Both the position numbers and the translations under genes were made by a program. Positions 22,265 through 59,055 of a DNA stretch of 64,000 nucleotides are shown piece after piece; position 1 is the stretch's first letter; every line of letters begins with the position of its first letter. The notes beneath the pieces were generated by a model, which was given only the letters and a program-made list of their open reading frames with translations, was not told the origin of the DNA and searched no databases. The DNA lies in NCBI RefSeq assembly GCF_000143415.4, contig NW_003314439.1, forward strand, positions 3,337 through 67,336. The letters are read 5' to 3'. This DNA comes from Selaginella moellendorffii. Taxonomy: Eukaryota; Plantae; Lycopodiophyta.

Positions 22265-22392
22265 TGCCCGGGCGCCCTCTCTCGCGACTAAAACCCTCGC
22301 CTAAAACCCTGGAACGCGGCGTTTTAGGGTTTATGCGATAAAGATATACCCTAGGTGGGAGTTTCAAATAGAAAGATCTTATAACCTTTAGG

Positions 22393-24554
22393 CTACCAAT
22401 AATCTCCGCAAGAACACGTCCCATCCTTCGCAAAGTGATGAAACCTCCTGTTATCCCTCACGATGATCTCCCGTTGCATCACTTTCGCAAAGAGCTTCGT
22501 CGCGGTGTGACAATCGCCGCAAACTCGCAAGTTCTTGATGATCCTCAGCGCCGTCCCTGGCGGCGTCGTGATCGATCCATACGCGATCGCCAGCCTCTCG
22601 GAGTGATACCACAGCAATCTCTCCTTCTGATCCTCCGGAACATCGTGAAGAACATACCTCGTGTCGGGGATGTATCCCTCCTTCTTGATCAGATCGGTGA
22701 GCCTGTGGACCTCCTCATACGTTTCCTTGGTGTGAGGATGCGATCGATCGCCCGCGACGAAGCCACGAACGTTGTTCTTGACGCTGATCATGCTCTTCCC
22801 GGGCTCCTTCTTGATCGCCCTCGCCGCGATGAGCTTCCTCACTCGCTTGGCATCCTCCCACCTCGCGGGAGCTCTTCCGCCAGTGATCATCCCGCCACCG
22901 CCCAGAGGATCAGTCTTTGGATCCAGCCGCATGATCACGTCCGCGCAGCGATTCGCGCGCTCCATGTCGTTGTAGCTCCGGCAATTCCCCAGCAGCGAGT
23001 GCCAGATCCTCTCGTCCCACTCCTCCGCTGCCATCGCCCGGATGAGCTCCTCCGCCAGCGCGAGCTCTCCTCTCCTCCCCAGCGCGTCCGCCAGGCAGCC
23101 AATGTGCTCCCTCTCGCGCGCCAGCCCGTGATCCACCGCCATATCCACGAAGAACTTCACCGCCTCCTCGATCATCCCGGCGTGCGCGCACGCCGCCAGC
23201 ACGCCCACCATCGTCGCGCCGCTGGGCCGCCACCCATCCTGCTGCATCCTCGCCGCCATCGCCACCGCGCCGCGAGGATCGCCGTGCCGCCCCAGCGCGG
23301 CGATCATCGCCGACCACGCTACTGTATCCGGCCTCTCGATCTCGCCAAACACCGCGCTCGCGTCCTCCATGGATCCACACCGCGAGTACATGTCCACCAG
23401 CGCGGTCCTCACAACGTCGTCGCGGTGGAGGCCAAGATCCATCGCCGAGCAGTGGAGAGCTTTCCCTTCCTCTAGATCGGGGATGCTCGCGCAGGCGCTG
23501 ATCGCCACCGCGAGAACGAGATTGTCCGCCGCCACCCTCCTCCGGATCATCTCCTGGAAGATCGCCAACGCCTCCCTCGGCTGCTTGTTGTTCGCGTAGC
23601 CGGCGATCATCGCCGTGTAAGCCGCGACGCTCTTCTGCGAGATCTTGTCGAACGCCTCCCTCGCCAGGATCATGCTCGAGAACCGCGAGAACATCCCGAT
23701 CACTGCAGTGCCGATCCTGGCGCTGGCGTCCAGGCTGCGCTGCTGCTGCTCGCTCGCCAGCGCCTGGATCTTCTTGCCATCTTCCAGCGCGAGGTTCTTG
23801 CAAGTATCCAGGATGGTGATGAACGTCACCTCGTTGGGCTTCACTCCCTCGGCCTCCATCCTCTCCAGGATTTGCATCACGCTGTTGAAGCTCCCCAGCC
23901 GGCAGTAAGCTCCAACGAGAACAGTCCATGCCGCCACTCCCGGCTGGTCGATCCGATCAAACGCCCGGCAAGCGTCCTGGATGCTTCCGATCCTGGCGTA
24001 CATCTTCACCACCGCGGTCCCGACCATCGAATCTCTCTCGAGCTCGCGATCCAGTACCATCGAGTGGATTCTCTTCCCCTGCGCGATATCTCCCAGCCCG
24101 ATCACCGAGTCGAGCACCGTCACGAAGCAAATCCTGTCCGGCACCACGCCTTGCTCGCGCATCCGATCGAAGAGGTCCAGAGCTCCAATGTAGTCCCTGT
24201 GCTCGTTGCAAGCTGCCAGAATTTTCGTCCAGGAGACCACATCGCTGCTTGGAGCTCGAAGAAACGCCTCCAGTCGATCACCCAGATGATCCAGCTTGCT
24301 TCCCGCGGTCTGGGACTGGATCCTGTACTGCTCCGCCAGGACATTCGCGGTGCCATACTTCACTCCAGGAAGAAAAGTCGAGATCAGTGGACTAGAGAGA
24401 ATTTCTGGCCCAGTCGAGACCCCTCTCGATCCCTGCTGCTGCTGGCACTGCCGGAGAAATCGCCCTGGAAAGAGGAATCAGTAACAATGCAGCCCAATTG
24501 GAGTCTCGTGATCTTACCCAGCAGCCCAGCAGCAGTCGATCGCGCTCGTTTCAT
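22393..24554 (-). CDS. PLS-class PPR-DYW RNA-editing factor, tandem paralog (exon 1 24554-24518, exon 2 24464-22393)
   Basis: PPR repeats, HSERLA, CGDCH and terminal DYW; a 53-nt phase-1 intron follows [12 protein letters not shown]. Confidence 0.93.
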
Positions 24555-24621
24555 CGCGAGGAAAAACCCTTAGGGTTCTTCATAAACCCTGGCCCCGCGC
24601 CTGGCGATTCGAACCCGAGAC

Positions 24622-25980
24622 TTAGTCCTGGAAGTCGAAGAAGCTAAAGACGTAGCTCTCCTCCTCGCGCTTCTCCCTATCCCAGCCAAGGATTCTCTCG
24701 TGGATCTTCGCCATCGCCCTCTGCCCATCTCGCCCCGGCCGGCTCGATCCATAGGCAGCAACCAGCTTCTCGCGGATGGCGTCGGAGATTTCCACCCGGT
24801 TCCTCACCAGCAGCGCGTGGATCATCTTGCAATCCTTGAGCCCGGGGCTGGAATCCAGCGCCAGGAGGAAGCTCTCTCTGTCCGGGACGATCTTGCTCAA
24901 ACACATCCGCGTGAATCCCTCGAGCGCCTTGATCCGGTGTCCGTGAGTGAGATAGGCCCGGATCATCGCGTTCCAAGCCTGGAGATCCTTCTTATGAATC
25001 CTCTGGAAGATCTCCACGGCTTCGTCGAGGGATCCACAGCGAATTCCATACATCCTTACGAGCTCCACTGCCAGATCGCGGCGGAGATCACAGCTGCTGC
25101 TGCTAGCGCACGAGTGGATCAACCTCCCGATCGACAAATCCTCCGCGCTGCGGCAAATTCCAAGCGCAATCCGGAAGCTGGAAGGATTGAGCGGCATTCC
25201 CTCCAAGATCATCACTCTAAACATCCCCAGCGCCCGCGATAGATCCCCGTTCCTGGCAAACGCCTCGAGGCAAGCGTTCCACACCAAGACCCTGTGAAAT
25301 CTCTTGACGCGATCGAACGCCTGGACGGCGGCCTCGATCTCGCCGCAATTGGAATACATCCCGATGAGCGAGATCGCAACCCCGGCGTCAAGATCATACC
25401 CGCAGCGCCGGATCGTGTCGTGGAAGAATCGCCCCAGGGAGAGATCGCGCTTCATCCCAGCGGCCTCCACGGCCATGGCGAGCATCGACGGATCGGCCTT
25501 GAACGCCTTGAGCCGCGCGAGGTGGAGAATCTTGAGCGCCTCGTCTGGATCCCCGGCCGTGACATAGGCGCGCATGATCGCGGTGAAGGAGAGGACGTTG
25601 TGGCTGCCGAGGCCATCGAAGATCCGGCGCGCCTCGCCCGGATTCCCAAATGCCGCGTACATGAAGACGAGATCGTTGCCGACGAATCGCTCGGCCTCCA
25701 TCCGGCTCCGCCGGATGTGATCGTGGACCCTGGCGCCCTCGGCCATGGCGCGCAGCCGCGTGCACAGCTGCAAGACGTGCTGATAGGAATCCACATCGAA
25801 CGGCTCGTCCCTGGCATCGATGATCCTGAGAAACTCCTGAAGCTCCCGGAAATCCTCGCCACGGCTCTTCCTCCGCGCATTCCCTGCATCGTCATCCTCC
25901 TCGTCTTCTTCGAGCTTCCCGGCAGCGATCAATCGCGCTCTAGTCCTGCATGCCGCGGCCGCGGCCCATCGCCGGAGCAT
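24622..25980 (-). CDS. PLS-class PPR protein without a DYW domain
   Basis: 452-aa intronless ORF with PPR motifs (LVFMYAAFGNPGEARRIFD, AWNAMIRAY) and an Arg/Ala-rich targeting peptide. Confidence 0.88.
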   Translation of the reverse strand: MLRRWAAAAACRTRARLIAAGKLEEDEEDDDAGNARRKSRGEDFRELQEFLRIIDARDEPFDVDSYQHVLQLCTRLRAMAEGARVHDHIRRSRMEAERFVGNDLVFMYAAFGNPGEARRIFDGLGSHNVLSFTAIMRAYVTAGDPDEALKILHLARLKAFKADPSMLAMAVEAAGMKRDLSLGRFFHDTIRRCGYDLDAGVAISLIGMYSNCGEIEAAVQAFDRVKRFHRVLVWNACLEAFARNGDLSRALGMFRVMILEGMPLNPSSFRIALGICRSAEDLSIGRLIHSCASSSSCDLRRDLAVELVRMYGIRCGSLDEAVEIFQRIHKKDLQAWNAMIRAYLTHGHRIKALEGFTRMCLSKIVPDRESFLLALDSSPGLKDCKMIHALLVRNRVEISDAIREKLVAAYGSSRPGRDGQRAMAKIHERILGWDREKREEESYVFSFFDFQD

Positions 25981-43728: not shown

Positions 43729-45963
43729 ATGCAGCTTCTCCGGGCGCTATGGCTTCTCTCTGCGCTGCTGTTGCTACTCCTATTGCCGCTTGGGATTCAC
43801 GGCTTGGAGAGCGTCGATCGCGATGCTCTAGAGGAAGAGGATTTGGATCTGGAAGACGAGGATCTCGACACAGTGGAAGGCCCCAGGAGCGATGTGGCTA
43901 TGAATTTCGTGGCCGATCTCACAGATGAGAGCGCGCCGCGCGTGATTTCGTCGCGGGAGTATGTTCTTCTTCTAGGGTACGCGAGCTGGTGTAGCAGGAG
44001 CGCGGCGCTGCTGCCGGAATTCGCAGCAGCAGCATTGGATCTTGCTGGCTATGGCGATGGCAATGGCGCCATTGTCTTTGCCAAGATCGATGCCATTGCG
44101 AATCCAAAGACCGCCAAGCTCTACAATATCAAGGGATTCCCGACAGTGCTCTTCTTTGTCAATGGATCTGTCCAGCAAGCATACTCGGGAGGTGACTCTA
44201 AGTCGGTAAATTTTCCTCTTTCTCGTTCTTTTTGTTCTTCCTCTTTCATGCTCTAAACTAAAAAGAGATTTTTCTGACCAGGGAGGAGATTATCGACTGG
44301 GTGAGAAAGAAAACTGGCTCGCCAGCCTCTACAGTGGTCTCAACGAAAGACGCGGAAAATTTTCTCGCGAATAGTTCTGTCATTGTGGCCGGATTTTTCG
44401 ACAAATTTGAGGTGAGCTTTGTCCTCCTGCTTACGTAGTTTGCTGGATTTATCAAGTTTTGTCCAGGGAGATGACTACAAGAGCTTTATCGGAGCTGCAA
44501 AGCAGGAAGTTGGCACACCGTTTATCCAAACAAACAGCCTCAATGTGGCGCAGACATTTCATTCGAGTATTCGTAAACCACCGATGGTGTGGATACAGAA
44601 GAATGAGCCCGAGTTTTATGTTCCTTTCGGTAAGACCAATTCTCAATCTTCATTCTCAATCGAGACAAATGCTTGTTTCAGATGGAACTTTTAGTGCACA
44701 AAATCTCCTGGATTTTGTCGAGCTCAACAAGTTCCCTGTCGTTGTAAGGATGACGTCTAAGAATGCTGCCAGAATAAACTCCAGTCCTCTTAAGCTTCAG
44801 GTTTGATTGTTTTTTTCCTTTGCGTGTCATTTTCAAATCCCTGTGCAGGTGTTACTGTTTGCAAATGAAATCGACGTGAAAACTGTGTTGCCTCTGTTTG
44901 AGGACGCTGCAATGGCATTCAAGGGCAAGGTACTGTGCTTTGAGTCTGTTAAAAAGTTCTTGAGAGCTAGCTTATCCTTTCGCAGTTGATCTTTCTCGTG
45001 GTAGAAAACAGTGACATAGACTTTGCAATGCCATTTCTCTCGATGTACGGGGTTCAACCTGAGAAGCCTGTTGTGAGTTTTGATCTCGTTTTGTCATTTC
45101 ACATTGTATCTAATACGGCCGTACAACAGATCGTTGCCTTCAACTATGACAATGGCCAAAAATTTCTTCTGGAGGAAGATATCAATCTGCAGAACATTCT
45201 GGTTCGTAATGATAGTATATTCACGAAGTGTTGCATTTCTAACAGCATTGTATGTCCAGGCTTTCTGCCAGAATTTGTTGTCTGGAGATCTTACACAACA
45301 CTATAAATCAGAGCCTATCCCTTCCAAGGTACTGAGACTTTAATCGTGGTTGTCTTGACGGTCGTGGATTTGTGCAGGACGAGAGAGATCTACGAATTGT
45401 TGTTGGGAAAACGTTCGAGAAGATTGTTCTTGATGATTCCAAAGACGTCTTTCTCCAGGTTGGATGTTTTCTTATTTTTACGTCCACTCTTTTGTCTAAG
45501 AGGCTCATGCTTTCGATCACAGATAACTAGCCCATGGTGCGGAATGTGCGAGACAGCCAACAAAACAGTAGCTAAACTCGCGACGTTTTTCAAAGGCATT
45601 CCATCCCTTGTCATAGCGCAGATTGACGCATCTTCAAATGAGCACCCCAAGCTAGAGGTAATATTTTCAAAGTGTAGCCTATTCTTGTTTCTCACCTTCG
45701 TTTTTCCCTTGATAGGTGACGACTTATCCAGCATTTTTGTTCTACCCCGCGGGCCAGAAAAACCAACCTGTAAGTCCAATTCCCTTTTACAAACTCGGTG
45801 TAACTCCTTGCCACAGATCACCGCTCACGCAAAGACAAACTTAAAAGGCCTGGTCCAGTTTGTGAAGAAACACGCAGCCATTCCTTTTGCAATGCCAACG
45901 ACACAGCACACCAAAACCAAAACGAGCTCTACATCATCACCCCCTGATAAAGACGAGCTGTAG
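43729..45963 (+). CDS. Protein disulfide isomerase-like protein, PDIL1-5/1-6 type
   Basis: Signal peptide, acidic segment, active sites WCSRS and WCGMC, KGFPT, KSEPIP, C-terminal KDEL. Confidence 0.93.
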
Positions 45964-47284
45964 CGAAAACTCCAACGCTGCAATGTGGTAAATAGCAAAG
46001 CTGCTCTCCGGTAAGACGAGAGAAGCGGTAAGCTAAACGACAAGCATAGCTTTTTGTTTCTTCCAAGCTTGAACAGTGGTGTGAGTTACTGCTAAACACT
46101 TACTTCCAGAGAACGCTTACTTCAATTTGTTTTTAATTCCTCCAGAAGAAGCATGATAGTAAACTCCCGAGCATGCTCGCGTACAGGAGCTCGAGTCGCT
46201 GCTCAATCAAAGGCTTTTGCAGTTCACTGCATTCGCAAGATTAAGGACTTCGTCACAGCTGCGAAGATATAAGGTGTCCGAGATAATGGCTTGGATCTCC
46301 AATGAGGAAGAAGGAAACTTCTGATATCTTTCAACCTCCATAACCTTCAGCATAAACATTTAAGAACATATAGCCTCCAATCGTTAGAGACAAAAGCCTT
46401 ACCACACTGTGCTTATCAAATCTTAATGAAGGAAAGTTTTGCTCTAGCTCCAATGCTGCTTAGTTGAGGAGTGCTTGGCAGTGTCACCATAGCTTCCACA
46501 AACGTCCCTCCCATTGCCCCTTTTGCCAGTCGACCGGGATTTAGAAGCAACGTAGTGAGCTTCTCTGTGCGTGGCTAGCTTCACACCAGGCGTGTAGCTT
46601 AAAGACTGCAAAAGAAAAACCACGAAAATCACGTCAGTGAGATACTTGAAACTTCTACCTTGACGAAAGGGACCAAGTCCGACGATAGAACGATGATATC
46701 TGGCGTGCAAGGGAAGTCCAAAGCGCTGGGATTGACAGCGAGGTTCAAACAAGTGCCTAAAGCTGGCGGAAACAATGGATAAAAGCTGGACGAAAAGCAA
46801 TACAAGAGTCAGTGTTAAGGTAGATTTTTGGAGCAAGCTTTTGATACCCTCTTTGGCCAACAAGCTGTGCTCCCAGCCTCGACATTCTATCGCTGGAGGT
46901 GCCCGGTGGATTTCGAGCCGCTTCTTCACTGCTTAGATGTCGAAGGATATCTGTTGTGCAGCAGCCAATGGATACCTCATCCAGGCGAAACACACTTGGA
47001 TTCGGCAGTAGAGATATCTGGAAAATGCGACCAAAACTTAGTCTGAGAAAACAGATTTTTTAGGTACCTGCTGGGATGAATCTTCAAACATGAAACTATT
47101 AAAAGGAGGCTGCCAGCAGGAAAAAAACAAAAGTTAAGAGATTGAGAAACTCATCGGTGAGAGTACCTGAGGAAAAATTCGATCGTGAAACACGTCGCGT
47201 GTGGAGGGAATCAGTATAACCCTCGCCCCTGCTCCTAGAAACTGGCAGTAATCCTCTAGCTATACACATTGAGAAACCGTGAAT
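45726..47284. repeat. Segmental duplication copy A (PDI 3' end plus POLA2 3' end)
   Basis: Near-identical to 55474-57015. Confidence 0.95.
46416..47284 (-). pseudogene. POLA2: POLA2 pseudogene, 3' part (continues at 50380-50631)
   Basis: Duplicate of 56141-57015 with an 11-nt frameshifting deletion near 46577; interrupted by an insertion. Confidence 0.88.
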
Positions 47285-48054
47285 GGCCAAATAGGTGCGT
47301 TAGTTTTTGCGTTTCTTTTGTTTGGTTTGTGGATTGCCAAAGTTTTACTTCGACCGAGGGAATTTCTACGACTTCACTTCCTTGGGTGTGTGAGTTTGTT
47401 TTTTGCTCTAGATTGTCATCTGATACTTCCCTTTCGTGTTTTACAGTGAGGGAGCTCGATGTTCCGGGTGTGATTCACGAGAGGAAAATCTATCCTTTCG
47501 AGTTTTCGTCAGTGGAAATGCAGGCTCAGGTATACATTCACGGCTTGGATATTTTTTGTAATGGATTGTTTTGCCAGATATGTTCTTAAGGTGACTATAA
47601 CTCGCAGCTACGTACCTAAGATTGTGGAATACTGGGTAATGAGATACTTGTGGAGAAACATTCATCGCTCTTACGCTTTGTTTTTACCAGGTTCAAAAAC
47701 TTCTAGTGCACCCCGACGTGAACAACAGTATCAAGGTGAAAACTTCGATAATTTTCTTTTTAAAAAAGGTTTTTCTCTTTGTCGGCATCGAGGATTGCTT
47801 GCATATCGAATACGAGTACAGTAAGAGCAAGTGCGTTTCGAATACGTGGAAACATGCTTTGTGTCAACTGAGCGTGAGTGCTTTTTCTGTGCCAGATTCC
47901 ACTTAAAGGATGTAATCGTCGGGAAGATTTACTTTCTTCTGGTCCGCATATCGAGATTAGAAAGTGCGAGTCGACCGGCTCAGGTGCCAACGCTTACAAC
48001 AAAAGTGAAACACTTGCAAAGTTCGAAATCATGGATGGAGTGCCTGTCCGTGGT
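47285..48054 (+). pseudogene. VPS26: VPS26 (retromer subunit) fragment, middle exons with introns
   Basis: GQI|..YFDRGNFYDFTSL|VRELDVPG..YPFEF..YVLKVTI..NNSIK..VGIEDCLHIEYEYSKSK|FHLKDVIVGKIYFLLVRI..ETLAKFEIMDGVPVRG. Confidence 0.9.
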
Positions 48055-48064
48055 GAGAACTTCA

Positions 48065-48348
48065 AGTCTTCAAGAGCATCGGATCTCAGCACAGACGTGT
48101 ACACGCACCTCTGCTTTGCGTTCGCGAGTGTCAACAGCACAACTTTCTGGGTGGAAATCCCGGTGGAGAACATCGATATCGCGCGACAGTGTACGAGCCT
48201 GGTCAGGAGCAAGAATCCGCTCATCAAGACCCTCCTCTCGATAGGTGGCGCCGGGGCCAACACGACGTTCTTCTCGCAGAGGGCGAGCAACAGTTCCAGC
48301 AGGGGCGAATTCGTGCGGAGTAGCATTGCCTTGGCACGAAGTTACTGG
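48065..48348 (+). pseudogene. GH18 (class V) chitinase fragment
   Basis: YTHLCFAFA..KNPLIKTLLSIGG..SRGEFVRSSIALARSY; ends before the catalytic DxDxE motif. Confidence 0.85.
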
Positions 48349-48504
48349 TAAGTTAACACTATCTTCCGGAGTTCTTGGAACAATAGATCTAACTTTGTGT
48401 GATCACTTTCCGGCATGGGTACGAATCACCCATTCGTACACGTATACACGCCACATCAACAGTGACATGTCATCAAAGATTAGAGTTAGGGTGGCACATT
48501 AGCA

Positions 48505-49864
48505 GTGGGAAATGGCATGTGTGTGTGCGTCAGATGTAGTAGCAAGGGCGCTAGAAAAGAGGAAAAGCTCAGAAGTAGAAGAAAAGCAGATTGTCCAGCT
48601 TCTCAATGGTTTCAAGCTCAAAAACGACAAAAAAGTGGAGGCAAAACAGGAATTGAAGGACTGAATGAAGGATTCAAGCACACAGTTGTAAGGTACCTAC
48701 AAGTAAGTGCGTCAGGGGTTGGCCATGGGCCCTTTATTGTTGCAGAGACTGTGTCCTATGGCTCTTGGGAGATCTGGTCTCTTTCAATGGAGACTTGTTG
48801 GAGATTAAGATTCTTTTACGAGCTCAAGGGAGGAGAGTTTGGGACAGTTTATCTCTTCGGTGACCCTTCCAGTTTGCATGAGGCAACAGCTTCGTGGTTT
48901 GTTCTAGAAGTGGCGGAACAAGCAGCTAACTTCTTTGTGACTCATTTTCCAGCAAAGGATGTGCCAAGGTTCTGTGAATTGGTATTTGTTGTAGGCAGCA
49001 CCACTTTTAAGTTAGTAAATGGATCTCACAAAGAACTAAACGTCCTTTTCGAATATATCTAACTTGAACACTTTGGTGCAAAGGGCATTAAGGATGTGGT
49101 GAATAAGATGGGGACACCCAGTCTCAATTGCTATGGATCCTTGGCCGGAAGGGCTGGCTTGGGCGCACTGCCAAGTGTGGGGGATGCACCCGGGGTCATA
49201 ATCAACAATTTAAAAGGGTCTGGAAGACCTAGTACCTATTAGCAGAGTACTTAAGGTGTGCTATCAAGGTTGTATACAAAAATAAGAATGTGGAAACGCT
49301 CAAAGCAAAGTGGGAACAAGTTAGATGCCATTTGGCGGTTGGGATTAAAATTGAGTCAAAGAGAATTTCAAATGCTCTACATGTCAAACTTAATTGCTTC
49401 TGGAAAGAAGCTAAGAAGAGGCTCAAAAACAGTCCGAAAGTGTGCTCCAAGGATAATAGAGACAAATTCCATTTGAAGTTCCTGTTGAGCTAGTTGTTTG
49501 CAAATGTTGAGCCGAAGCATGACTTTCTCGTGGAGTGGGATCTCTATGAACTCCAAAAGCACATTATGACTGCCCTCTTCAGAGAGTACCAGGGGAACAA
49601 GATCATTATTGACGGGCTGCCAATGAACCCCAAGATCGATGACAAGCTTTATTGTAGCTGCTGGGGGAGAGACGATGGGAGAAAAATGATTCTCTATGAC
49701 AATGCCAAGGTAAGTTTTCATTATAATTGCTAGAACTAATTCTTTGGTTTTTGCAGTGTAAGGTTGGATGGTACCATTTGGATTGTGTGGGGTTTGCGGA
49801 CGATGAACCACTTGATGACGTCATCTTCTACTGTCAACAGTGTCTAGCTATAATGTGGAAGTGA
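48505..49864 (+). pseudogene. Decayed Uma2-like nuclease-PHD finger gene
   Basis: GPFIVA..CWRL..GDPSSLH, VVYKN..LAVGIKI and VEWDLYELQKHI align with the 51232-51957 protein; followed by LYCSC..MILYDNAK|CKVGWYHLDCVG..YCQQC; contains stops and frameshifts. Confidence 0.75.
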
Positions 49865-50109
49865 GGCGAGGACTCAAAATACACTGAAAATTCGTTCCAT
49901 GCATAGGTGGCGGAGATAGATATGATCAAAGAGTGAAACTCTATACTTCTTCCTAGAAAGACAAACCTTAATGTTCTGAACGTACATGATAAAAGCACAT
50001 TAGCCCTAGATGCTTCGAATATTCTCTATTTCTGTGAGCTAGAGTGCGAAAGAGCAAGGGCACGAGAGGGCGGCAGCAATGCAGAGCCTCTTCGTGGGAG
50101 CATTTGGTC

Positions 50110-50372
50110 AGCTGTGTGTCATCTCGATCGATCTCTCCGACATGGAGTCACGCAAGCAGGTCTGAACTGTGCCTTTGCTCTTTCTTAATCTTTGGTCTTT
50201 CCCAGGCGAGCATCAAGAAGGAGAATGGCCAAATAGGGATGGTTACTGCCGTGTTACTGGCGAGGGTGGTTGGATCATCCTTGTTTCCCAATTTTTAGTA
50301 ATTCTTTTTTTTCTGTTTAGGTGCGTATCGATCCCCTTCCCGGCCGGAAATCGAGCATCAAGGACTGAAATA
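50110..50372 (+). pseudogene. VPS26: VPS26 fragment, N-terminal exons
   Basis: CVISIDLSDMESRKQ|ASIKKENGQ..|VRIDPLPGRK..EHQGLK with GT-AG introns. Confidence 0.8.
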
Positions 50373-50379
50373 CTCTACC

Positions 50380-50631
50380 AACTCTATCAGTGATTCCCTG
50401 CTTGACGTGGGGATGCTCGGCATCAAAAAATAGTCCCATCTAGCAAAAGAGAGAGTAGAACACATGAATATCCATCTATATAAAATTCTCTCACCAGCAA
50501 TAGAACGTTTGGTCTTTTATTCCTAGCGTAGGCTAGTAACTCCATCAAAGGCTCAAACGAAAGGTTGTCACTTGTTGTAAAAGGACCTGACGCAACAATC
50601 TATAAACGCAAAGATTAGTCAGCCTCACTGC
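50380..50631 (-). pseudogene. POLA2: Displaced internal piece of the POLA2 pseudogene
   Basis: Near-identical to about 57089-57341. Confidence 0.9.
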
Positions 50632-51231
50632 AAATGGAGGATAGTAGGGATTGTGGCGTTTGAGAGTTCGACCCCTCGGTGGACTGTGAATGCCGCAGCC
50701 GGGCATTTGGTGCGGAGACGATCTCAGAGGAGGGCGGGTTCCAGAAGAGCGATTTGGCGTCGAGGAGGGCGTCGCTCTTAGCATTGGAGTGGGAGGTGAT
50801 CGCCGCGGGGCTGCAGGAGGCAGATTTATGGACGACCTTGGAGAGATTTGACAGAGACCTGGAGCAAGTTGTGAACTTGGTCGTACCAAACAACGGAGAA
50901 AACACGATCTAACTAGGAAAAGCAAAAGCAGAAGCTTACCATTTATCTAAGGGTACTACGCTGCAGCCGCGAGCCAACCTTGTGCTGGACCATTGCGGAG
51001 GCGAGGTGATGAGCTCAGCAGGGTGGCAGTCGTTCTTTTTGTTTGGAACGCAGAAGCAAAGAGCTCCAGACACAAAGCTCAGTTGGGTTTTGCTCTCTCG
51101 ACACTTCCTAGTTCTTCTCCATGCCACAAATCTCTGTCGTGCAAGTCCAACCTATCCTCTTTCCTCTCTTGCAGCAGCGTATTGCTAAGATATTTTTGCT
51201 CGATCTCACTTTTTGATTGAAATTCTAGGAT

Positions 51232-51957
51232 TTACAGCAGAGACTCCTGCTCAAAAGCTTGACGCTCTTGCTCGATCATACGAACTATATACTGCTGCAA
51301 CCAAAACAGATCAAACTCAACGTAGTAGTCACCCTTCACATCAGCAGTGAAAGACGACACTGGAAACTTCACCACAAAGAGCTCTCGATTCTGCTCGTTG
51401 CAAAACTCAGGCCCAAACTGGATCTCCATCGCATCGTTGCCTCTCTCCCTGGCTACAAACGTAAACTCGTCACCAGGCCGCGCAATCTTCACCCCGATCG
51501 CCACCAAGCAGCCCGACTCCACCCACAGATCCAAAACCTCCCTTAAAACTTCCAGTGGCTCGTTCTTGTACGCCACCTCCAACACCGCCCGCGCTGGCTG
51601 CGCAAGCGACGACCCAGAGAAGAAGCAAGCGTCCGGTTCCTTGTCGCCGGAGATGGTCCGGAGGCGAGATGCTCCAGCGCCAGTGATCACTTGTGGAAGA
51701 GAGGCTAGACCAATGCCCGGAATCTGGATGATGTGAAAGATGATGGAGCGCTCTAGCGCAGATGACACGGTGCTGTGGACTATTGACGGATCCCCATAGG
51801 CCAAAACCTCACCCCTCCTGTACTCTAGCCTCCAAGTCGAGTCGCAGCTACACATCCAGGCGTGGTACACCACCCATGGGACATTTGTGGCCACGAGAAA
51901 TGGCCCCGGCTGCCCTCTGCTGTAGGCGGCAATCGCTTGCTTCGATAAACCGTCCAT
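51232..51957 (-). CDS. Intronless Uma2/DUF820-like PD-(D/E)XK endonuclease-fold protein (241 aa from the ATG at 51957)
   Basis: RLEY..GE, PS..H, KEPD and VLEVA motifs in the order typical of Uma2-family proteins; uninterrupted ORF. Confidence 0.75.
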   Translation of the reverse strand: MDGLSKQAIAAYSRGQPGPFLVATNVPWVVYHAWMCSCDSTWRLEYRRGEVLAYGDPSIVHSTVSSALERSIIFHIIQIPGIGLASLPQVITGAGASRLRTISGDKEPDACFFSGSSLAQPARAVLEVAYKNEPLEVLREVLDLWVESGCLVAIGVKIARPGDEFTFVARERGNDAMEIQFGPEFCNEQNRELFVVKFPVSSFTADVKGDYYVEFDLFWLQQYIVRMIEQERQAFEQESLL

Positions 51958-51979
51958 GAAACCCTTAAGTTTTAGGGTT

Positions 51980-52162
51980 ATGGCGAGTGAAGCTCGACTC
52001 AAGGGGAATGGCCCATTCCAGCGGGGGGAATTCATCGACGCATATCATTGCTACAAAGTCAGCGCCAAACTAACTGTCATGGAGGAGAATTCATCGGCTC
52101 TTACTTTTACCCTCTCCAACGCATACTTAGAAGTGGGAAATTCTTTGCATTCAGGCATGTAA
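51980..52162 (+). pseudogene. Truncated TPR-protein N-terminus
   Basis: MASEARLKGNGPFQRGEFIDAYHCY..LSNAYLEVG resembles a TPR motif; stops after 60 aa. Confidence 0.45.
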
Positions 52163-52186
52163 CGCTCTTTCGATTGACAGGAAATC

Positions 52187-52240
52187 TTTAGGGAGAAAAG
52201 AAAGGGTTTAGGGTTTAAACCCTAAACCCTAAATCCTAAA
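52187..52240. repeat. Head-to-head plant telomeric repeats forming a 28-bp perfect palindrome
   Basis: agggtttagggttt/aaaccctaaaccct at 52203-52230, with flanking degenerate units. Confidence 0.85.
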
Positions 52241-52775
52241 CGATACAAGGCTCAGTCTTGGCGTTGTAGTCAACAAAAAGCGGGAGATGCTGTTCAGATG
52301 GAGGTCTGTGGATTCTGACTTGGAGCGTGAGATCCAATTCGGAACTGACTCTTGTCAAAGTTCCCAGGGCTTCGTCTACACGTTCCCAGCTCATTACTTC
52401 TCTATGGACTTGCCGGAGGGCTCGAGCTTTACATTCGACCTGTTTGACCTTCAACAACACGTCTTGTGTAAGCTCGACCAGCAGCTGGCTGCAAACCGTG
52501 CAGACATCGAGTCTCCACTTGTGGATGCGGCTCTGTACCGCACCATCTGTACTTGCAAGAAACGGGAGAGTGATCGAGGCAAGGTAATCACGTGCTGCTA
52601 CAGGGATTGTGACATCGTAAGGTTTCATTGCGAGTGTGTTGGAGTAAGCTCCCAGGGAGAGCTCCCGTACCCCTGGTTCTGTGACAACTGCGATCAAATC
52701 CGAGAGGACATCAAGGAACACGTAAGCAGGCAGGAGAAGAAAGAAGCTGGGCGAGATAAAACTTATCACAAGTGA
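52241..52775 (+). pseudogene. 5'-truncated Uma2-like nuclease C-terminus fused to an intact C4HC3 PHD finger
   Basis: EIQFG..C..FP..F..FDLFDLQQHV matches the C-terminus of the 51232-51957 protein; followed by CTC..CCYRDC..FHCECVG..WFCDNC. Confidence 0.75.
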
Positions 52776-52893
52776 TGCAAGTGATGGAGATTTTACTCCT
52801 TTGTTCTGGTTCTAATTGAAAGCTTACATTCTTTTCAACTACTATAAGTTTCATTCCCATTAGGGAGGTTTTCATTTGTTTCTCCAGGCGCTG

Positions 52894-55460
52894 TGTTAGA
52901 GCCACGTGGCGTACAGCCACCTGGCTTGAGTTGCATTCCTTCAGTTTAGGGCTTTCTTAGTTTTCTTTCCCATCCTGTGTGAGATCCATCCCAGGGGATT
53001 GTTCTGGGAGTGTTCTCATTCTCTATAGAGTGCTAGGCCATGAGGCTTGGCTTCTCTCATCATGGTATCAAAGCAATAGGTTAGATTTTTTATTTTTTTT
53101 TGGTATGAGTAGTGCCATAGATGCTAGGACAGGATGGCGTCTTTTTCTTCCTCCAAAGACATGGAGCAGTTCGATGGGACAAATCATCTTGCCTGGAAAG
53201 AACGTGCATAATTCTGGTTTATGAGGTGGGGATTCTAGCCTGTGTTATCTGGATTGAGAAAATGCCCGTCCAAAGACAATGATATACAGATCCATACAAC
53301 AAGTGGAAAGACCTGGATGCTAGAGCAAATGGAGCATTAGGAGGAGGACTTGGCCCTCTCTACAGTGTCCACGTGAATGTGGAGAAGAGTTGTACTGAGA
53401 ATTGGAAGTCAATTTGTGAAATTATGGGAGTGGACCTGCAAGAAGATGTGGGCGTGATTCTTTGTCGCAGTGAGCTATACAGTCTGGAGCAGTAGCCACA
53501 CAAGCGTGTGCATCAGGGATCCTGGTATCATCAGGGATCACATTCATCCCTAGCATCCAAGTCTTTCCACTCGCTGTATGGATTTGTGTCATCATCATCC
53601 TTGGATGGGCATTTTCTCAATCCAGATACCACAAGCCAGAATCCCCACCTCATAAACTAGAAGTGTGCACATTCTTTCCAGGCAAGGAAATTTTTCCCAT
53701 CAAACTGCTCCATGTCTCTGGAGGAAGAAGACAACGCCATCCTGTCCTAGCATCTATGGCACTGCTCATGCCAAAAAAAAATATAACTTATTGCTTTGAT
53801 ATCAGGTTCAGATACCAGAGGCTTGGACTGGGCAACGTCCACACATGGATATCTTATGGCAGTTTGGCTGTCTAGCTTTTTCTCATGTTCCTAATGAACT
53901 ACACAGGACATTGGATGTTAAATCCAAGAAGTGTGTATTTATGGGCTATAGTGATGAGCAGCGAGGATACTGACTCCTTCATCTAGACTCGGGAAAAGAG
54001 TTTGTGAGTTGAGATGTCATCTTTGATGAATCTCATGTGTATTTTCAACGTCACAAGGATCCAGGAGTTCCTTCTACAGGTTTTCTTTGTGGAGAAAGTA
54101 GGGCGAGCTCACAGCCTGTTTTCTTTCATCCATGGGAAGATGAGGAGGATGATCCTCTACCTCGACTGAGGTGGTTCCTGATCCTGAGCCCAGGAACGTG
54201 ATCAGGCTCTGGAGCTCGTGTCACAGCAGAGGTTGAAGCCCTGGCTGTGCTTATGCTCCAGCTGCAGGGGAAGCACAATATACCTGAACATGAGGATATG
54301 GTTCCTGAACCTGTGCATCACCGAGATCCTGATCTTATCCAGGTTTTGAGCCGCTCTGGTCGCCCTTTAACCTATACAGCGAGGGGTGGAGCTTATCAGT
54401 GAGAGCAAGCTGAGAAGCGAGCACGAGCAGCTGCTAGAGCTTCTTACATCAGAGTCGAATGGCTATATTCACAGCAGCAGAGGTGAAGATTCCTGCATGG
54501 GGTGATGCTATTGATGCTGAGATGTGAGCTCATGCAACAAATGAAACCTGGTATCTTCCTGATGAAGTTCCTGACAATGCTAATGTAGTTTCGACAAAGC
54601 TACTTTTCTGCGTGAAAGCTGGACCTTCAGGAGAAGTGCAGCGCTTTAAAGCTAGGCTTTACTCAGATCGAAGGCATAGACTTTACAGAAACTTTCAGCC
54701 CGGTCGTGAAGATGGCTTTTATCAGGCTGTTACTTGCTTTATGATCTTTATGTGGGGCAAATGGATGTGAAGACTGCATTTTTACATGGAGAAATTCCTG
54801 AGAAGGTTTACATCCAGCTCCTGACAGGCCTCGATCCGAGCCAAAGGATTTATCGGCTGAAGAAGGCTTTATACGGCCTGAAACAAAGTCCACGCATCTG
54901 GTATAAGAAAATTGATTCTTTTCTGATTTCTCTTGGATTCCAGAAAAACCATGCCAACTCAAACGTTTATATGAAGATTGAGGATGGTGCCTTGGTCATT
55001 TTGGCCTTGTATATGGACGATGGTATCTTTGTTTCCAACAACAGAGATCTTCTTGCTGAAATCAAGAGAAAGCTAGGAGCCCAGTTTGAGATGCAAGATC
55101 TTGGCCCCGTGCACACTTTCCTTGGGATTCAAGTTCAGCGACCACAGCCAGGACTTGTGACACTCTCACAACGAGCTTTGACAGGGGCAGCACAAGAGGT
55201 GAGCTGGCTTCGTGAGCTTGTAGGGAGTATGCAGTTAGGATAATCAATTGGTGATTGCTCTTTATGAGAATTTAAGATATCACACCAAGATGAAGCATAT
55301 ACAAATAAAATACCACTACATCATACATCAGAGAACAAGTGATGGGAGGAGAGTTGACACTTAAAAGTACATGGCAACTGAGGACTAGGTTGCTGATATA
55401 TTCACTAAGGCTCTTCCACCTATTATTTTCTGCAAACATCTAGAAGTGCTTGGAGTATGC
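52894..55460 (+). mobile_element. Degenerate, rearranged Ty1/copia retrotransposon lacking a 3' LTR
   Basis: Probable LTR tgttag..tcatca (52894-53062); tRNA-Met PBS tggtatcaaagc; KCVFMGY; RT motifs QMDVKTAFLHG, KALYGLKQ and LYMDD; RNase H ADIFTKALP. Confidence 0.92.
53063..53804. repeat. Inverted repeat with arms of about 265 bp (53063-53331 and 53541-53804)
   Basis: The second arm is the reverse complement of the PBS plus gag start (gtgccatagatgctaggacaggatggcg / cgccatcctgtcctagcatctatggcac). Confidence 0.92.
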
Positions 55461-55473
55461 GACCTGTCCTTGC

Positions 55474-55693
55474 ATCCAGCATTTTTGTTCTACCCCGCAG
55501 GCCACAAAAACCAACCTGTAAGTCCAATTCCCTTTTACAAACTCGGTGTAACTCCCTGCCACAGATCACCGCTCACGCAAAGACAAACTTAAAAGGCCTG
55601 GTCCAGTTTGTGAAGAAACACGCAGCCATTCCTTTTGCAATGCCAACGACACAGCACACCAAAACCAAAACGAGCTCTACAGACGAGCTGTAG
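55474..55693 (+). pseudogene. Duplicated 3' fragment of the PDI gene, ending TDEL
   Basis: Matches 45726-45963, with an internal deletion before GACGAGCTGTAG. Confidence 0.9.
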
Positions 55694-56140
55694 CGAAAAC
55701 TCCAACGCTGCAATGTGGTAAATAGCAAAGCTGCTCTCTGGTAAGACGAGAGAAGCGGTAAGCTAAACTACAAGCATAGCTTTTTGTTTCTTCCAAGCTT
55801 GCACAGTGGTGTGAGTTACTGCTAAACGCTTGCTTCCAGAGAACGCTTGCTTCAATTTGTTTTTAATTCCTCCAGAAGAAGCATGATAGTAAACTCCCGA
55901 GCATGCTCGCGTACAGGAGCTCGAGTCGCTGCTCAATCAAAGGCTTTTGCAGTTCACTGCATTCGCAAGATTAAGGACCTCGTCACAGCTGCGAAGATAT
56001 AAGGTGTGTCCGAGATAATGGCTTGGATCTCCAATGAGGAAGAAGGAAACTTCTGATATCTTTCAACCTCCATAACCTTCAGCATAAACATTTAAGAACA
56101 TACGAATCGTTTGAAACAAAGTCTTACCACGCTGTGCTTG

Positions 56141-59055
56141 TCAAATCTTAATGAAGGAAAGTTTTGCTCTAGCTCCAATGCTGCTTAGTTGAGGAGTGCT
56201 TGGCAGTGTCACCATAGCTTCCACAAACGTCCCTCCCATTGCCCCTTTTGCCAGTCGACCGGGATTTACAAGCAGCGTAGTGAGGTTCTCTGTGCGTGGC
56301 TGGGACTCGTCTAGCTTCACACCAGGCGTGTAGCTTAAAGACTGCAGAAGAAAAATCATGAAAATCGCGTCAGTGAGATACTTGGAACTTCTACCTTGAC
56401 GAAAGGGACCAAGTCCGACGATAGAACGATGATATCTGGCGTGCAAGGGAGGTCCAAAGCACTGGGATTGACAGCTAGGTCCAAACAAGTGCCTAACGCT
56501 GGCGGAAACAATGGATAAAAGCTGGACAAAAAGCAATACAAGAGTCTGTGTTAAGGTAGATTTTTGGAGCAAGCTTTGATACCTTCTTTGGCCAACAAGC
56601 TGTGCTCCCAGCCTCGACATTCTATCGCTGGAGGTGCCCGGTGGATTTCGAGCCGCTTCTTCACTGCTTAGATGTCTAAGGATATCTGTTGTGCAGCAGC
56701 CAATGGATACCTCATCCAGGCGAAACACACTTGGATTCGGCAGTAGAGATATCTGGAAATGCGACCAAAACTTAGTCCGAGAAAACAGATTTTTTAGGTA
56801 CCTGCTGGGATGAATCTTCAAACATGAAACTATTAAAAGGAGGCTGCCAACAGGAAAAAAAAACAAGTTAAGAGATTGAGAAACTCATCGGTGAGAGTAC
56901 CTGAGGAAAAATTCGATCGTGAAACACGTCGCGTGTGGAGGGAATCAGTATAACCCTCGCCCCTGCTCCTAGAAACTGGCAGTAATCCTCTAGCTACACA
57001 TTGAGAAACCGTGAATTGGTAGACAGCAACATATGAAGCAAAGAGTACGAACCCGTGTCGTTATCTCCTCTTGAAATACATGAGATAAAACTCTATCAGT
57101 GATTCCCTGCTTGACGTGGGGATGCTCGGCATCAACAAATGGTCCCATCTAGCAAAAGAGAGAGTAGAACACATGAATATCCATCTATATAAAATTCTCT
57201 CACCAGCAATAGAACGTTTGGTCTTTTATTCCTAGCGTAGGCTAGTAACTCCATCAAAGGCTCAAACGAAAGATTGTCACTTGTTGTAAAAGGACCTGAC
57301 GCAACAATCTATAAACGCAAGGATTAGTCAACCTCATTGCAAGCATTCCATGCAGACCATGTGTAGCGGTTGTGGTGTCTGGGTCTTCACTGTAAGATCC
57401 GTTGCTTGCCTCTTTGCAAGAGGATTATCATCCGGCGCCGAATGAGGAGGAAGTGGTAAAGAGTAAAAGATCCGGCTAGCAACAAGGCAATGCCCGCTCG
57501 GATTGTGTCCTTCCACCACAAGTATCTGGAATGCAAAATCGCACTTTGCGACGATAAAAGAAAACTCGAGTACCTGGCCCGGGAAAAGTGAAAACTGGCT
57601 TATCTCACGAAGATCCAAACGGACTCGATGCCCCCCAGAGTACTCAACGCTGTTTTAAGCTCTTGTTAGTGAAACAAGCTTAAACGAAATTAGAGCTCGC
57701 ACCTGCCTTCCAGCAAAACAGCGTTGGGATCTGCTTCTTCTGTATCGTAGCAAACTCTTCCAACAACGAGAATCTTTTCCTGAAACCATACGTCGATAAA
57801 ACTTGGAGCCATCACATACAGGTAACTCACCTGAGATGCATAGGCAACATGCTGCGACAGCGGCACAGATTCGTATTCTGAAAATGCTTGGACAAACTTT
57901 TTGATCCTTCTCTCGAGTTCGTTGAACTGCAGAACAAATTTTCAAAAGGACCGAACCTGGAAATAAGGGAAAACATTACCCTGCTTTCGACTTGATCAGC
58001 CATGTATCTGCAACCTGGCTTGAGCCCAGTGCTAAGCTCCTCGAGCTGACACCTTCTTACGTCTTTCAGCTTGCGTAGAACCAGATCTTCGGATTGCTGG
58101 ATATCATCCACTGCACTCGAACTAGCGTCGGGAAGGTGATCGTTGAAAACAAACTGGACAGTGCACTTGGTTGTACGTTGGCTGAAAGGCGTCGTCGGAC
58201 TGGGAACTTGTCTGGGAGTGACTTTAACCCGTGGTTGCGGCGGCGTAATGTATTGAGCTTCTCGAGAGCCTACCACTTTGTTGGGCGTCTTGCTATCCAC
58301 AAGCATTGCATCGCCAGTGAAGAATCTGTCCCGCTGTGATAAGTAAGCGTCGATAGAAAAAAAAGAGAACACGAACACTCTTACGTATCCAAATCATCCT
58401 TAGTGTAGATGTGCACCCCCCCATGCTCACGAATGAAATCGTTTCGCTGCTGAGTTTGTAGAAAAACTCGAAACTTGTCGATGTGAGAGTTTAGTAGTGT
58501 ATTTTTCTCCAGCTGCCTGAATCCATCCAAGCATTAGTATTCGTTTTTCCAAAGGGAAACAATTTGTCAACAAACTGAGGAATGAATCGTTATGAGAGCA
58601 TAAACACGGAAATAAAAAAAGGGAGGAAGAGACGAATAAAACAAACAAGGAACACTCTCACACAAACAAAAGCAAGGAAATCCACACAGTCACAAAAGAA
58701 TAGAGTGAAAAGAAATCCAAGGAAATCCACACACACACTCACAAAAGAATAGAATGAGCAAGGCACACGAAGGAAGAAGATCCACACACACTACTCACAC
58801 ATAATGCGAGGGAGAAAACCACTAGGAAAGAAGAAACTCACGAGTTGAGGTAGAACACCTCCCAGTGCTCCACTAGAGTCGAGGGCTTCAATCCAAAGCT
58901 CGAGCAAAGCGACACGCCTAAAGGAAGAAAAAAGATCCAACACGATCATGAGGAGAATGTAGCTACACTGGAGCGCACTTACATTGCCGGATGGTGTCCG
59001 CATTCTCCAGCGCGAAATTATTCTCCTGGAACACGCGCCCAATCTCTTCCTCCAT
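56141..59055 (-). CDS. POLA2: DNA polymerase alpha subunit B, multi-exon
   Basis: MEEEI..LKPSTLVEHWEVFYLN, SLFPGQ|ILVVEGHNPSG, GPF, LPNPS, SFYPLFPP, VNPGRLAKG..GGTF. Confidence 0.92.

Follow-up and report, generated by a model that had tools for sequence, protein, structure and literature searches.

Uma2 (DUF820, COG4636; Pfam PF05685) is among the largest uncharacterised nuclease-fold families in bacteria. In the main survey of the PD-(D/E)XK superfamily, Uma2 is listed as bacterial and its genes are described as sometimes linked to mobile elements (PMC3424549). Bacterial members have been described as likely solo toxins that form cassettes of paralogous genes (PMC2701414), while an early description refers to them as possibly 'uncharacterized DNA-binding proteins' (PMC1274311). 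The Crinkler (CRN/CR) effectors, as far as the summary of Zhang et al. 2016 given in PMC5289972 extends, join an N-terminal ubiquitin-like header to restriction-fold 'toxin' domains. Here we analyze a 64-kb stretch of the genome of the lycophyte Selaginella moellendorffii (contig NW_003314439.1, positions 3,337 to 67,336 of the forward strand; hereafter the window), which carries a cluster of three related loci with Uma2-like domains. Two of the three, loci 2 and 3, also carry a PHD finger similar to those of ING proteins, and our literature search turned up no publication on a Uma2-PHD protein from a plant. The reading that we favor, and consider likely, is that the window holds a cassette of a eukaryotic Uma2/DUF820 branch in which locus 1 is the sole live gene, loci 2 and 3 derive from PHD-fusion genes and are dead, and the fusion itself is a relic.

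Inspection of the window confirms that all three loci are real and are homologous to one another well beyond chance. Pairwise BLASTP aligns locus 1 with locus 2 at E=4e-10 and with locus 3 at E=7e-9, and a tblastn search with the paralogue P0005 as query matches pieces of the cluster at 9e-77, 4e-13, 4e-11 and 2e-8, where the 4e-13 match is locus 3. A hidden Markov model (HMM) of the family, run against the six-frame translation of the entire window, finds matches at three places only: locus 1 (1e-72), locus 2 (three pieces at 4e-29, 5.5e-9 and 5e-4) and locus 3 (9e-10). The three mutually homologous loci claimed in an initial annotation of this DNA are therefore borne out by pairwise BLASTP, tblastn and the family HMM alike, and every motif listed there (GPF.VA, GDPS..H, KEPD, LEVA, V.YKN and FDLF.LQQ) was found. 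Its descriptions of the individual loci also hold. Locus 1 is an uninterrupted 241-codon frame, locus 2 is decayed, with greater damage than first described, and locus 3 is truncated at its 5' end, where the profile match starts at position 185 of about 290, with a complete C4HC3 PHD finger after it. Related copies elsewhere in the genome provide the basis for comparison. A syntenic block on scaffold GL377604, beside POLA2 (L006), carries counterparts of all three loci, arranged as in the window. An unlinked copy of the locus-2 type resides on another scaffold (L001), and the loci of the multi-exon RefSeq genes for P0011 and P0085 (L003 and L007, respectively) represent a third PHD-bearing lineage.

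Locus 1 makes up the C-terminal part of the gene model SELMODRAFT_431954 (P0001) and is identical to P0001 residues 128-373. Its open reading frame (ORF) can be extended upstream to an ATG at 52035, and the resulting 267-aa ORF (51232-52035) matches four further S. moellendorffii proteins at 54-96% identity. This upstream start was rejected because the paralogues begin at a methionine homologous to that at 51957. The protein begins directly with the first helix of the domain and has no header domain. The locus-1-type gene of L006 is intact as well. The stand-alone paralogue genes are under purifying selection: among six intact members, locus 1 included, pairwise ratios of nonsynonymous to synonymous substitution (dN/dS) are 0.17-0.44, at dS values of 0.05 to more than 4. 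The neighborhoods of the paralogues consist of ordinary plant genes, including MIF, SMC, ADH, ABC, FtsZ and GH32 genes. With respect to expression, two contigs of run X1, which we guess to be an RNA run, span 51247-51962 at 98-99% identity, and raw RNA-seq (about 12% of each of two runs) places approximately one read pair on locus 1. Locus 1 is thus transcribed at most weakly. A homodimer prediction for the locus 1 product scored 0.57 versus 0.52 for the control, which is evidence in neither direction.

To compare folds, a model of the locus 1 product was generated with AlphaFold2 using an alignment of 79 sequences. This model has a predicted local distance difference test score (pLDDT) of 95.2 and a predicted template modeling score (pTM) of 0.90; an earlier run based on eight sequences (pLDDT 49.8) was discarded. 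Foldseek ranks 1-7 in the PDB are all Uma2/DUF820 structures (1wdj, 3ot2, 6okh and 9y1l), with E-values of 1e-6 to 1e-3. VIA-align of the model to Uma2 structures yields Z-scores of 16.9 (1wdj), 15.7 (3ot2), 14.1 and 11.5, followed by 8.7 for the next match, with 137-170 residues superposed at 2.4-2.7 Å. Both methods agree on the Uma2-like fold that had been claimed at the outset. Sequence searches of the PDB with locus 1 and with the family profile returned nothing useful. Uma2 is the only Pfam family matched repeatedly by the relatives (6 of 79, best 2.2e-6); P0004 reaches 11.8 bits, and P0005, P0003 and P0002 give no match. Judged by the model, the proteins appear structurally Uma2-like yet belong to a distinct, divergent branch.

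Inspection of the 79-sequence alignment reveals a small set of conserved polar positions. H61 is present in 76 of 76 aligned sequences, followed by D56 (69/75), K106 (62/71), D109 (61/69), E127 (62/69), E133 (63/68) and K157 (48/64), and N132 is also conserved. Locus 1 retains all eight, that is, every polar residue conserved in the family. Read as motifs, these are GDPS..H at the start of a helix, K-E-P-D ahead of core strand 2, E-V-A within core strand 3, N-E and G-x-K. In the model, D109 precedes the strand formed by residues 110-114 and E127 lies within the strand formed by residues 124-130, which are the positions of PD and (D/E)xK in the PD-(D/E)XK superfamily. From this arrangement we infer that the locus 1 product would be a metal-dependent nuclease or phosphodiesterase.

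Locus 2 is the decayed copy of a spliced gene in which a leader, a nuclease-like domain and a PHD finger in two exons follow one another (Table 1). A frameshift near 48655-48664 separates the N-terminal leader (ATG 48512) from the domain, and in-frame stops occur at the start of an insertion (TAA, 49060-62) and within a conserved block (TAG, 49491-93). Relative to the family consensus, the domain carries the replacements D109N, E127K and E133K. The first of these is common to all three locus-2-type copies, where the motif reads KELN in the window, KEPN in L001 and KESN in L006. In the finger, zinc ligand C3 is replaced by tyrosine (MILYDNAK here, MILCDN in L001 and L006), such that the C4HC3 pattern fails. 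The comparison of locus 2 with its paralogues gives substitutions by codon position of 32/31/39 and 48/35/38, with 27-48 gap columns; this even spread and the many insertions and deletions indicate neutral decay of the locus-2-type copies. No RNA-seq reads fall on locus 2 or on locus 3 in the fraction of the two runs described above.

The insertion within locus 2 is absent from L001 and L006, and L001 is contiguous from 10905 to 10915 at this point. A search of the rest of the window and of the fetched loci found no further copy of the insertion. Coverage by short contigs of run X5 rises over it to a depth of up to 23, compared with about 2 elsewhere, and the insertion is probably a small dispersed repeat. 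The leader of locus 2 comprises 45 residues, is Cys-rich and has no Pfam match. A Cys-rich start of the form M-A-C-C/V-G/C-V/A-S-D-V is common to both the locus-2-type and the P0011-type PHD-bearing lineages (window 48512-48540, L001 about 10360, L003 4001), and the stand-alone paralogues do not have it. This start may be a lipidation or targeting motif.

Locus 3 is a shorter relic, open from an ATG at 52287. Its HMM match covers profile positions 185-284 only, which means that the catalytic part is absent, and the six-frame HMM search found the missing upstream part nowhere in the 64-kb window. A word-indexed search over proteins of 99-315 aa, a range from which longer fusions may be hidden, found no predicted protein resembling locus 3.

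The two PHD fingers differ in the residues that would bear on histone recognition. The best PDB sequence match of the locus 3 finger is ING4 (E=7.6e-5), followed by ING3, ING5 and ING1, while exon 2 of locus 2 matches the PHD fingers of CFP1, PHF8, ING3, PHF2 and ING1. These matches support the ING-type identity proposed for the fingers in the initial annotation. Both score below the Pfam PHD (PF00628) cut-off of 24 bits, at 19.9 bits for locus 2 exon 2 and 11.7 bits for locus 3. In ING fingers, the aromatic cage for trimethylated lysine 4 of histone H3 (H3K4me3) includes a Tyr before C1 and a Trp before the His. Aligned to ING4, the locus 3 finger carries I, V and R in place of the Y, M and W of ING4, and the cage residues are absent. 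Y, M and W are retained at the cage-aligned positions of the locus-2-type finger (YCSC, GWYH), as judged by sequence only.

Table 1 Features of the Uma2-like cluster, with positions numbered within the window
Feature	Position	Strand	Remarks
Locus 1, intronless stand-alone Uma2-like PD-(D/E)XK gene, 241 aa	51232-51957	-	Open frame, ATG at 51957
177-codon ORF antisense to locus 3	52236-52769	-	Used as first exon of the locus 1 gene in Joint Genome Institute (JGI) models P0001 and P0002
Locus 2, pseudogene; N-terminal leader and Uma2-like domain, fused to an ING-like PHD finger encoded by two exons	48512-49864	+	Three HMM frame pieces
Locus 2, N-terminal half of nuclease-like domain	48652-49059	+	GPF.VA, GDPS..H; KELN replaces KEPD
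Locus 2, insertion of ~190 nt	49057-49243	+	blastn alignment with L001 is interrupted at 49056/49244
Locus 2, C-terminal half of domain and PHD exon 1 (from 49650)	49254-49709	+	IKVVYKNK replaces LEVAYKNE; in-frame TAG 49491-49493
Locus 2, GT-AG intron of 47 nt within PHD finger	49710-49756	+	gtaagt...tttgcag; frame kept across
Locus 2, PHD exon 2 (C4, WYH motif, C5, C6, C7) and TGA stop	49757-49864	+	Pfam PHD E=7.6e-4
Locus 3, 5'-truncated relic: last ~85 domain residues, linker and complete ING-like PHD finger	52248-52775	+	HMM 9e-10
Locus 3, PHD finger, complete C4HC3, ING-like (C-x-C start)	52548-52691	+	Pattern match

The ORF antisense to locus 3 (Table 1) has no Pfam match. Compared with L006, it yields dN/dS values of 1.39 when read in the antisense and 0.63 when read in the sense direction, each drawn from 11 substitutions only, and these values lend no support to its being coding. 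The ORF is probably an artefact of annotation, in which a frame on the strand facing a former coding region stayed open.

To address whether an intact nuclease-PHD fusion exists, each PHD-bearing copy was inspected for lesions. The gene structures indicate that the fusion was a real spliced architecture in at least three Selaginella lineages, namely the locus-2 type, the locus-3 type and the P0011 type. The canonical intron inside the locus 2 finger is present in L001 too, which implies that the fusion was once a mature spliced gene. Every PHD-bearing copy inspected is nonetheless broken in either the nuclease part or the finger. In L006, the locus-2-type copy has at least three stops and the locus-3-type copy has one stop and one frameshift, while L001 carries three stops and, within PHD exon 2, a deletion. 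L003 and L007 each have an intact Uma2-like domain followed by a PHD remnant that is broken differently in the two, such that the PHD finger of their common ancestor would have been intact. An intact fusion was not found in any of the loci read, which comprise window loci 2 and 3, L001, the two in L006, L003 and L007. Likewise, the PHD pattern occurs in none of approximately 89 fetched family proteins (a pair fetched afterwards consists of a twin from the same cluster and a stand-alone protein of 257 aa). The nuclease-PHD fusion noted initially therefore stands as a past architecture in at least three lineages and falls as an intact gene in any copy inspected. The accompanying proposal that the cluster is a chromatin-reading nuclease is not supported, since loci 2 and 3 are dead and without RNA reads, their counterparts in L006 and L001 are dead, and locus 3 lacks the cage residues.

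Taken as a mechanism, the favored reading would run as follows. Locus 1 would encode a stand-alone metal-dependent nuclease or phosphodiesterase that is kept by purifying selection, and loci 2 and 3 would be dead copies of paralogues whose Uma2-like domain had gained a C-terminal ING-like PHD finger. The locus-2 lineage would have possessed a spliced junction with an intron within the finger and would have retained the H3K4me3-cage residues. The family as a whole would follow a birth-and-death mode of evolution, rich in paralogues and pseudogenes, and would gain accessory domains, either PHD or ubiquitin-like, along the way. That is to say, birth and death, paralogue cassettes and shuffling of accessory domains together suggest a role in conflict or defence, and the family pattern looks closer to that of conflict or 'solo toxin'-type nucleases than to that of housekeeping enzymes. 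Some family members may also be targeted to chromatin.

The family itself is not plant-specific, as judged from its sequence relatives. Word-indexed protein searches with locus 1 retrieve close Selaginella paralogues only, and an exhaustive profile search recovers 79 relatives, among them proteins of Selaginella, of the ferns Adiantum capillus-veneris and A. nelumboides, and of Mycena fungi (P0034 and P0037). Fungal relatives reach profile E-values down to 4e-10. Look-alikes in the ESM Atlas are fungal clusters (Ascomycota and Mucoromycota), with TM-scores of 0.71-0.79 over residues 1-228 and feature scores of 0.94-0.95. One relative resides on a 1.26-Mb eukaryotic contig. Another, the intact 275-aa protein P0019, is encoded on a 16-kb ENA metagenome contig (L010) that is densely packed and intron-free and that also carries a C962R-type primase, TFIIS, TFIIB, thioredoxin and DUF5755. 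By gene content, this contig looks like that of a giant virus. IMG/VR contigs contain no relative, and the Big Fantastic Virus Database (BFVD) returns generic PD-(D/E)XK matches only, so the link to giant viruses comes from a single metagenomic contig. An origin of the window copies from an island of nucleocytoplasmic large DNA virus (NCLDV) sequence was considered and rejected, given that the neighbors are plant genes and that the family is not among the two NCLDV-like families of Selaginella (Maumus et al., PMC4083422).

In a quick maximum-likelihood tree, the Selaginella and fern sequences are interleaved in one clade with a Shimodaira-Hasegawa-like approximate likelihood ratio test (SH-aLRT) support of 87, which suggests that the paralogues predate the divergence of lycophytes and ferns. 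Outside this plant clade stand the Mycena sequences and the group with the virus-like contig sequence. A further architecture is found in P0014 (L004 4001-5456, GL377566), a multi-exon gene whose product has a ubiquitin-family domain at its N terminus (E=3.5e-16), joined by a linker to an intact Uma2-like domain. As annotated by JGI, the gene model of P0014 continues into a neighboring SMP/C2 gene, and the nearest relatives of P0014 are fern proteins.

Several alternative readings of the cluster were weighed against this background. Working nucleases tethered by a PHD finger to H3K4-marked nucleosomes, whether in the cluster or elsewhere in the genome, would constitute a chromatin-targeted toxin, a defence system or a selfish nuclease. 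The presence of the fusion in at least three lineages, where it arose or persisted, speaks for this possibility, as do the retention of cage-aligned Y, M and W in the locus-2-type finger, an intron in the finger as expected of a mature eukaryotic gene, and the differing lesions in L003 and L007 that point to an ancestor with an intact finger. The same copies count against it, however, because all PHD-bearing copies read are broken, D109 is replaced by N in 3 of 3 locus-2-type copies, and locus 3 has lost its catalytic part and bears I, V and R in place of the cage residues. The fetched family proteins are without the PHD pattern, no protein like locus 3 emerged, and loci 2 and 3 are without RNA reads, which together render a functional chromatin-targeted nuclease improbable. 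If the domain were instead catalytically dead in plants, it could serve as a module for nucleic-acid binding or protein interaction, and the PHD and ubiquitin-like fusions would then mark an adaptor in chromatin or ubiquitin signaling. The missing canonical Lys of (D/E)xK, the loss of D109 in all three copies of the locus-2 lineage and the early suggestion that Uma2 proteins bind DNA (PMC1274311) are all compatible with such a module. Yet about 90% of the 79 diverse relatives, locus 1 included, retain D56, H61, D109, E127 and E133, as expected of a metal-binding active site, and neutral decay affects precisely the lineage without D109. We consider a dead domain highly improbable.

It is also conceivable that the copies are the cargo of a mobile element, that is, a transposon-borne nuclease, with the cluster and its pseudogenes reflecting transposition in place of gene duplication. 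A unit of about 1.4 kb with the locus-2-type gene does recur on another scaffold at 81-85% nucleotide identity, and its homology ends approximately 180 nt to each side. Compared with its syntenic copy, the region has undergone rearrangement, and pieces of retroelements and pseudogenes flank it. Bacterial Uma2 genes have their own occasional links to mobile elements (PMC3424549). The ends of the 1.4-kb unit nevertheless bear no terminal inverted or direct repeats, and no transposase or integrase lies beside any of eight paralogue loci, where the neighbors are ordinary plant genes. The intact copies are moreover under purifying selection and deeply diverged (dS 1.2 to over 4), and the interleaving of Selaginella and fern sequences in the tree is as expected of old paralogues. 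A transposon origin is accordingly unlikely, and decidedly so. The reading of the window as one live stand-alone gene beside two dead fusion copies accommodates these observations, and a number of points weigh against it in turn. Evidence for expression of locus 1 is thin, and the X1 contigs carry 4-7 mismatches, which means that they may derive from an allele or a paralogue. Locus 1 scores 13.4-13.7 bits against Pfam Uma2 (E of about 0.05) and misses the gathering cut-off of 27. The canonical Lys is absent from locus 1, where the motif reads E127-V-A and the x-K position is Ala; our guess from the sequence is that K106 or K157 might substitute for it. To our knowledge, there is no biochemical evidence for any Uma2 member, so the label 'nuclease' derives from fold and motif. 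The survey of fusions took in only some of the genome's copies, and the view of the family as a conflict system is based on pattern only.

A broader proposal is tentative, and we hold it to be rather doubtful. Seed-free vascular plants would keep an old, diversifying Uma2-like family, in which some living members, elsewhere in Selaginella or in related species, would carry the domain in unbroken fusion with a PHD finger that reads H3K4me3 or with a ubiquitin-like domain. Such a eukaryotic nuclease would be aimed at marked chromatin in genome conflict or defence and would possibly have been exchanged with giant viruses and fungi. If this were true, the window would represent the graveyard side of an active birth-and-death system. 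Independent of this proposal, the analysis defines a eukaryotic Uma2 branch that spans a lycophyte, ferns, many fungi and a giant-virus-like contig, with a confident structural model and clear conserved residues. The natural fusions to ING-like PHD and ubiquitin-like domains hint at a nuclear, chromatin-linked role, and the branch offers a testable handle on what Uma2 proteins do. Because the nuclease-PHD genes of the window are dead, work on a 'histone-guided nuclease' must begin by finding an intact member.

The surroundings of the cluster present several further features. Window positions 44000-58000 are syntenic to GL377604 (L006) in inverted orientation, with extra POLA2 pieces, and several of the aligned segments end at L006 position 13601. 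Identity between the two is uneven, at about 97% around loci 1 and 3 and 77-89% across locus 2, which suggests that locus 2 may sit on a segment with a different history. Two POLA2-like exon fragments at 50380-50633 match L006 2889-3142 at 97%. The RNA-seq reads that align to these fragments show three fixed mismatches, a minus-strand CT..AC splice at 50440-50494 and loose ends that continue into other sequence; these features indicate that the reads stem from the real POLA2 gene elsewhere and that the window copy is a fragment. Upstream of the cluster, a single plus-strand ORF at 47878-48351 contains a Vps26 fragment (E=1.5e-8) followed directly by a fragment of glycosyl hydrolase family 18 (E=1e-12), and looks like a chimeric pseudogene patchwork. 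Just downstream, a plus-strand fragment of a retroviral/retrotransposon polymerase SH3-like domain at 53845-53973 (E=2.7e-13) constitutes a retroelement relic. Farther away, a GC-rich block at 19724-25980 (56-60% GC versus about 45% elsewhere) holds three long minus-strand ORFs of 705, 656 and 452 aa.

Comparison with known systems places the cluster closest to bacterial Uma2/DUF820/COG4636 proteins, represented by TT1808 (1wdj), Ava_3926 (3ot2), 6okh and 9y1l. The fold is shared over nearly the whole domain, and the motifs follow in the same order, with a helix start of the G-D-P..H type, P-D ahead of a strand and E-V-x in the strand that follows. Multi-copy cassettes of paralogues are likewise a feature of both the bacterial and the Selaginella genes. 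In contrast, locus 1 is merely 11-18% identical to the bacterial proteins and is about 50 residues longer, with an additional helix at the N terminus and a long helix at the C terminus, and the genes here are eukaryotic, some with introns and with fusions to PHD or ubiquitin-like domains. Fungal proteins annotated as 'hypothetical' or as 'restriction endonuclease domain-containing' match the structure over its full length and have the same conserved residues, whereas they form a clade separate from the plant proteins and, in those inspected, have no PHD or ubiquitin-like fusion. The Uma2-linked fingers share with the H3K4me3-reading PHD fingers of ING4 (2pnx), ING3, ING5 and ING1 the C4HC3 arrangement, the C-x-C start and the elements C-D-N-x-x-C, W-(F/Y)-H and C-V-G, with ligand C3 lost from locus 2 of the window, but in Selaginella the finger is joined to a nuclease-fold domain and not to the N-terminal domains of ING proteins. 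Crinkler-type effectors, within what the cited summary covers, likewise use a restriction-fold domain as a modular, rapidly diversifying unit, and the architecture of Selaginella P0014 is reminiscent of their ubiquitin-like header joined to a restriction endonuclease domain, while the loci of the window differ from these effectors in having no header domain and no NTPase or kinase partner.

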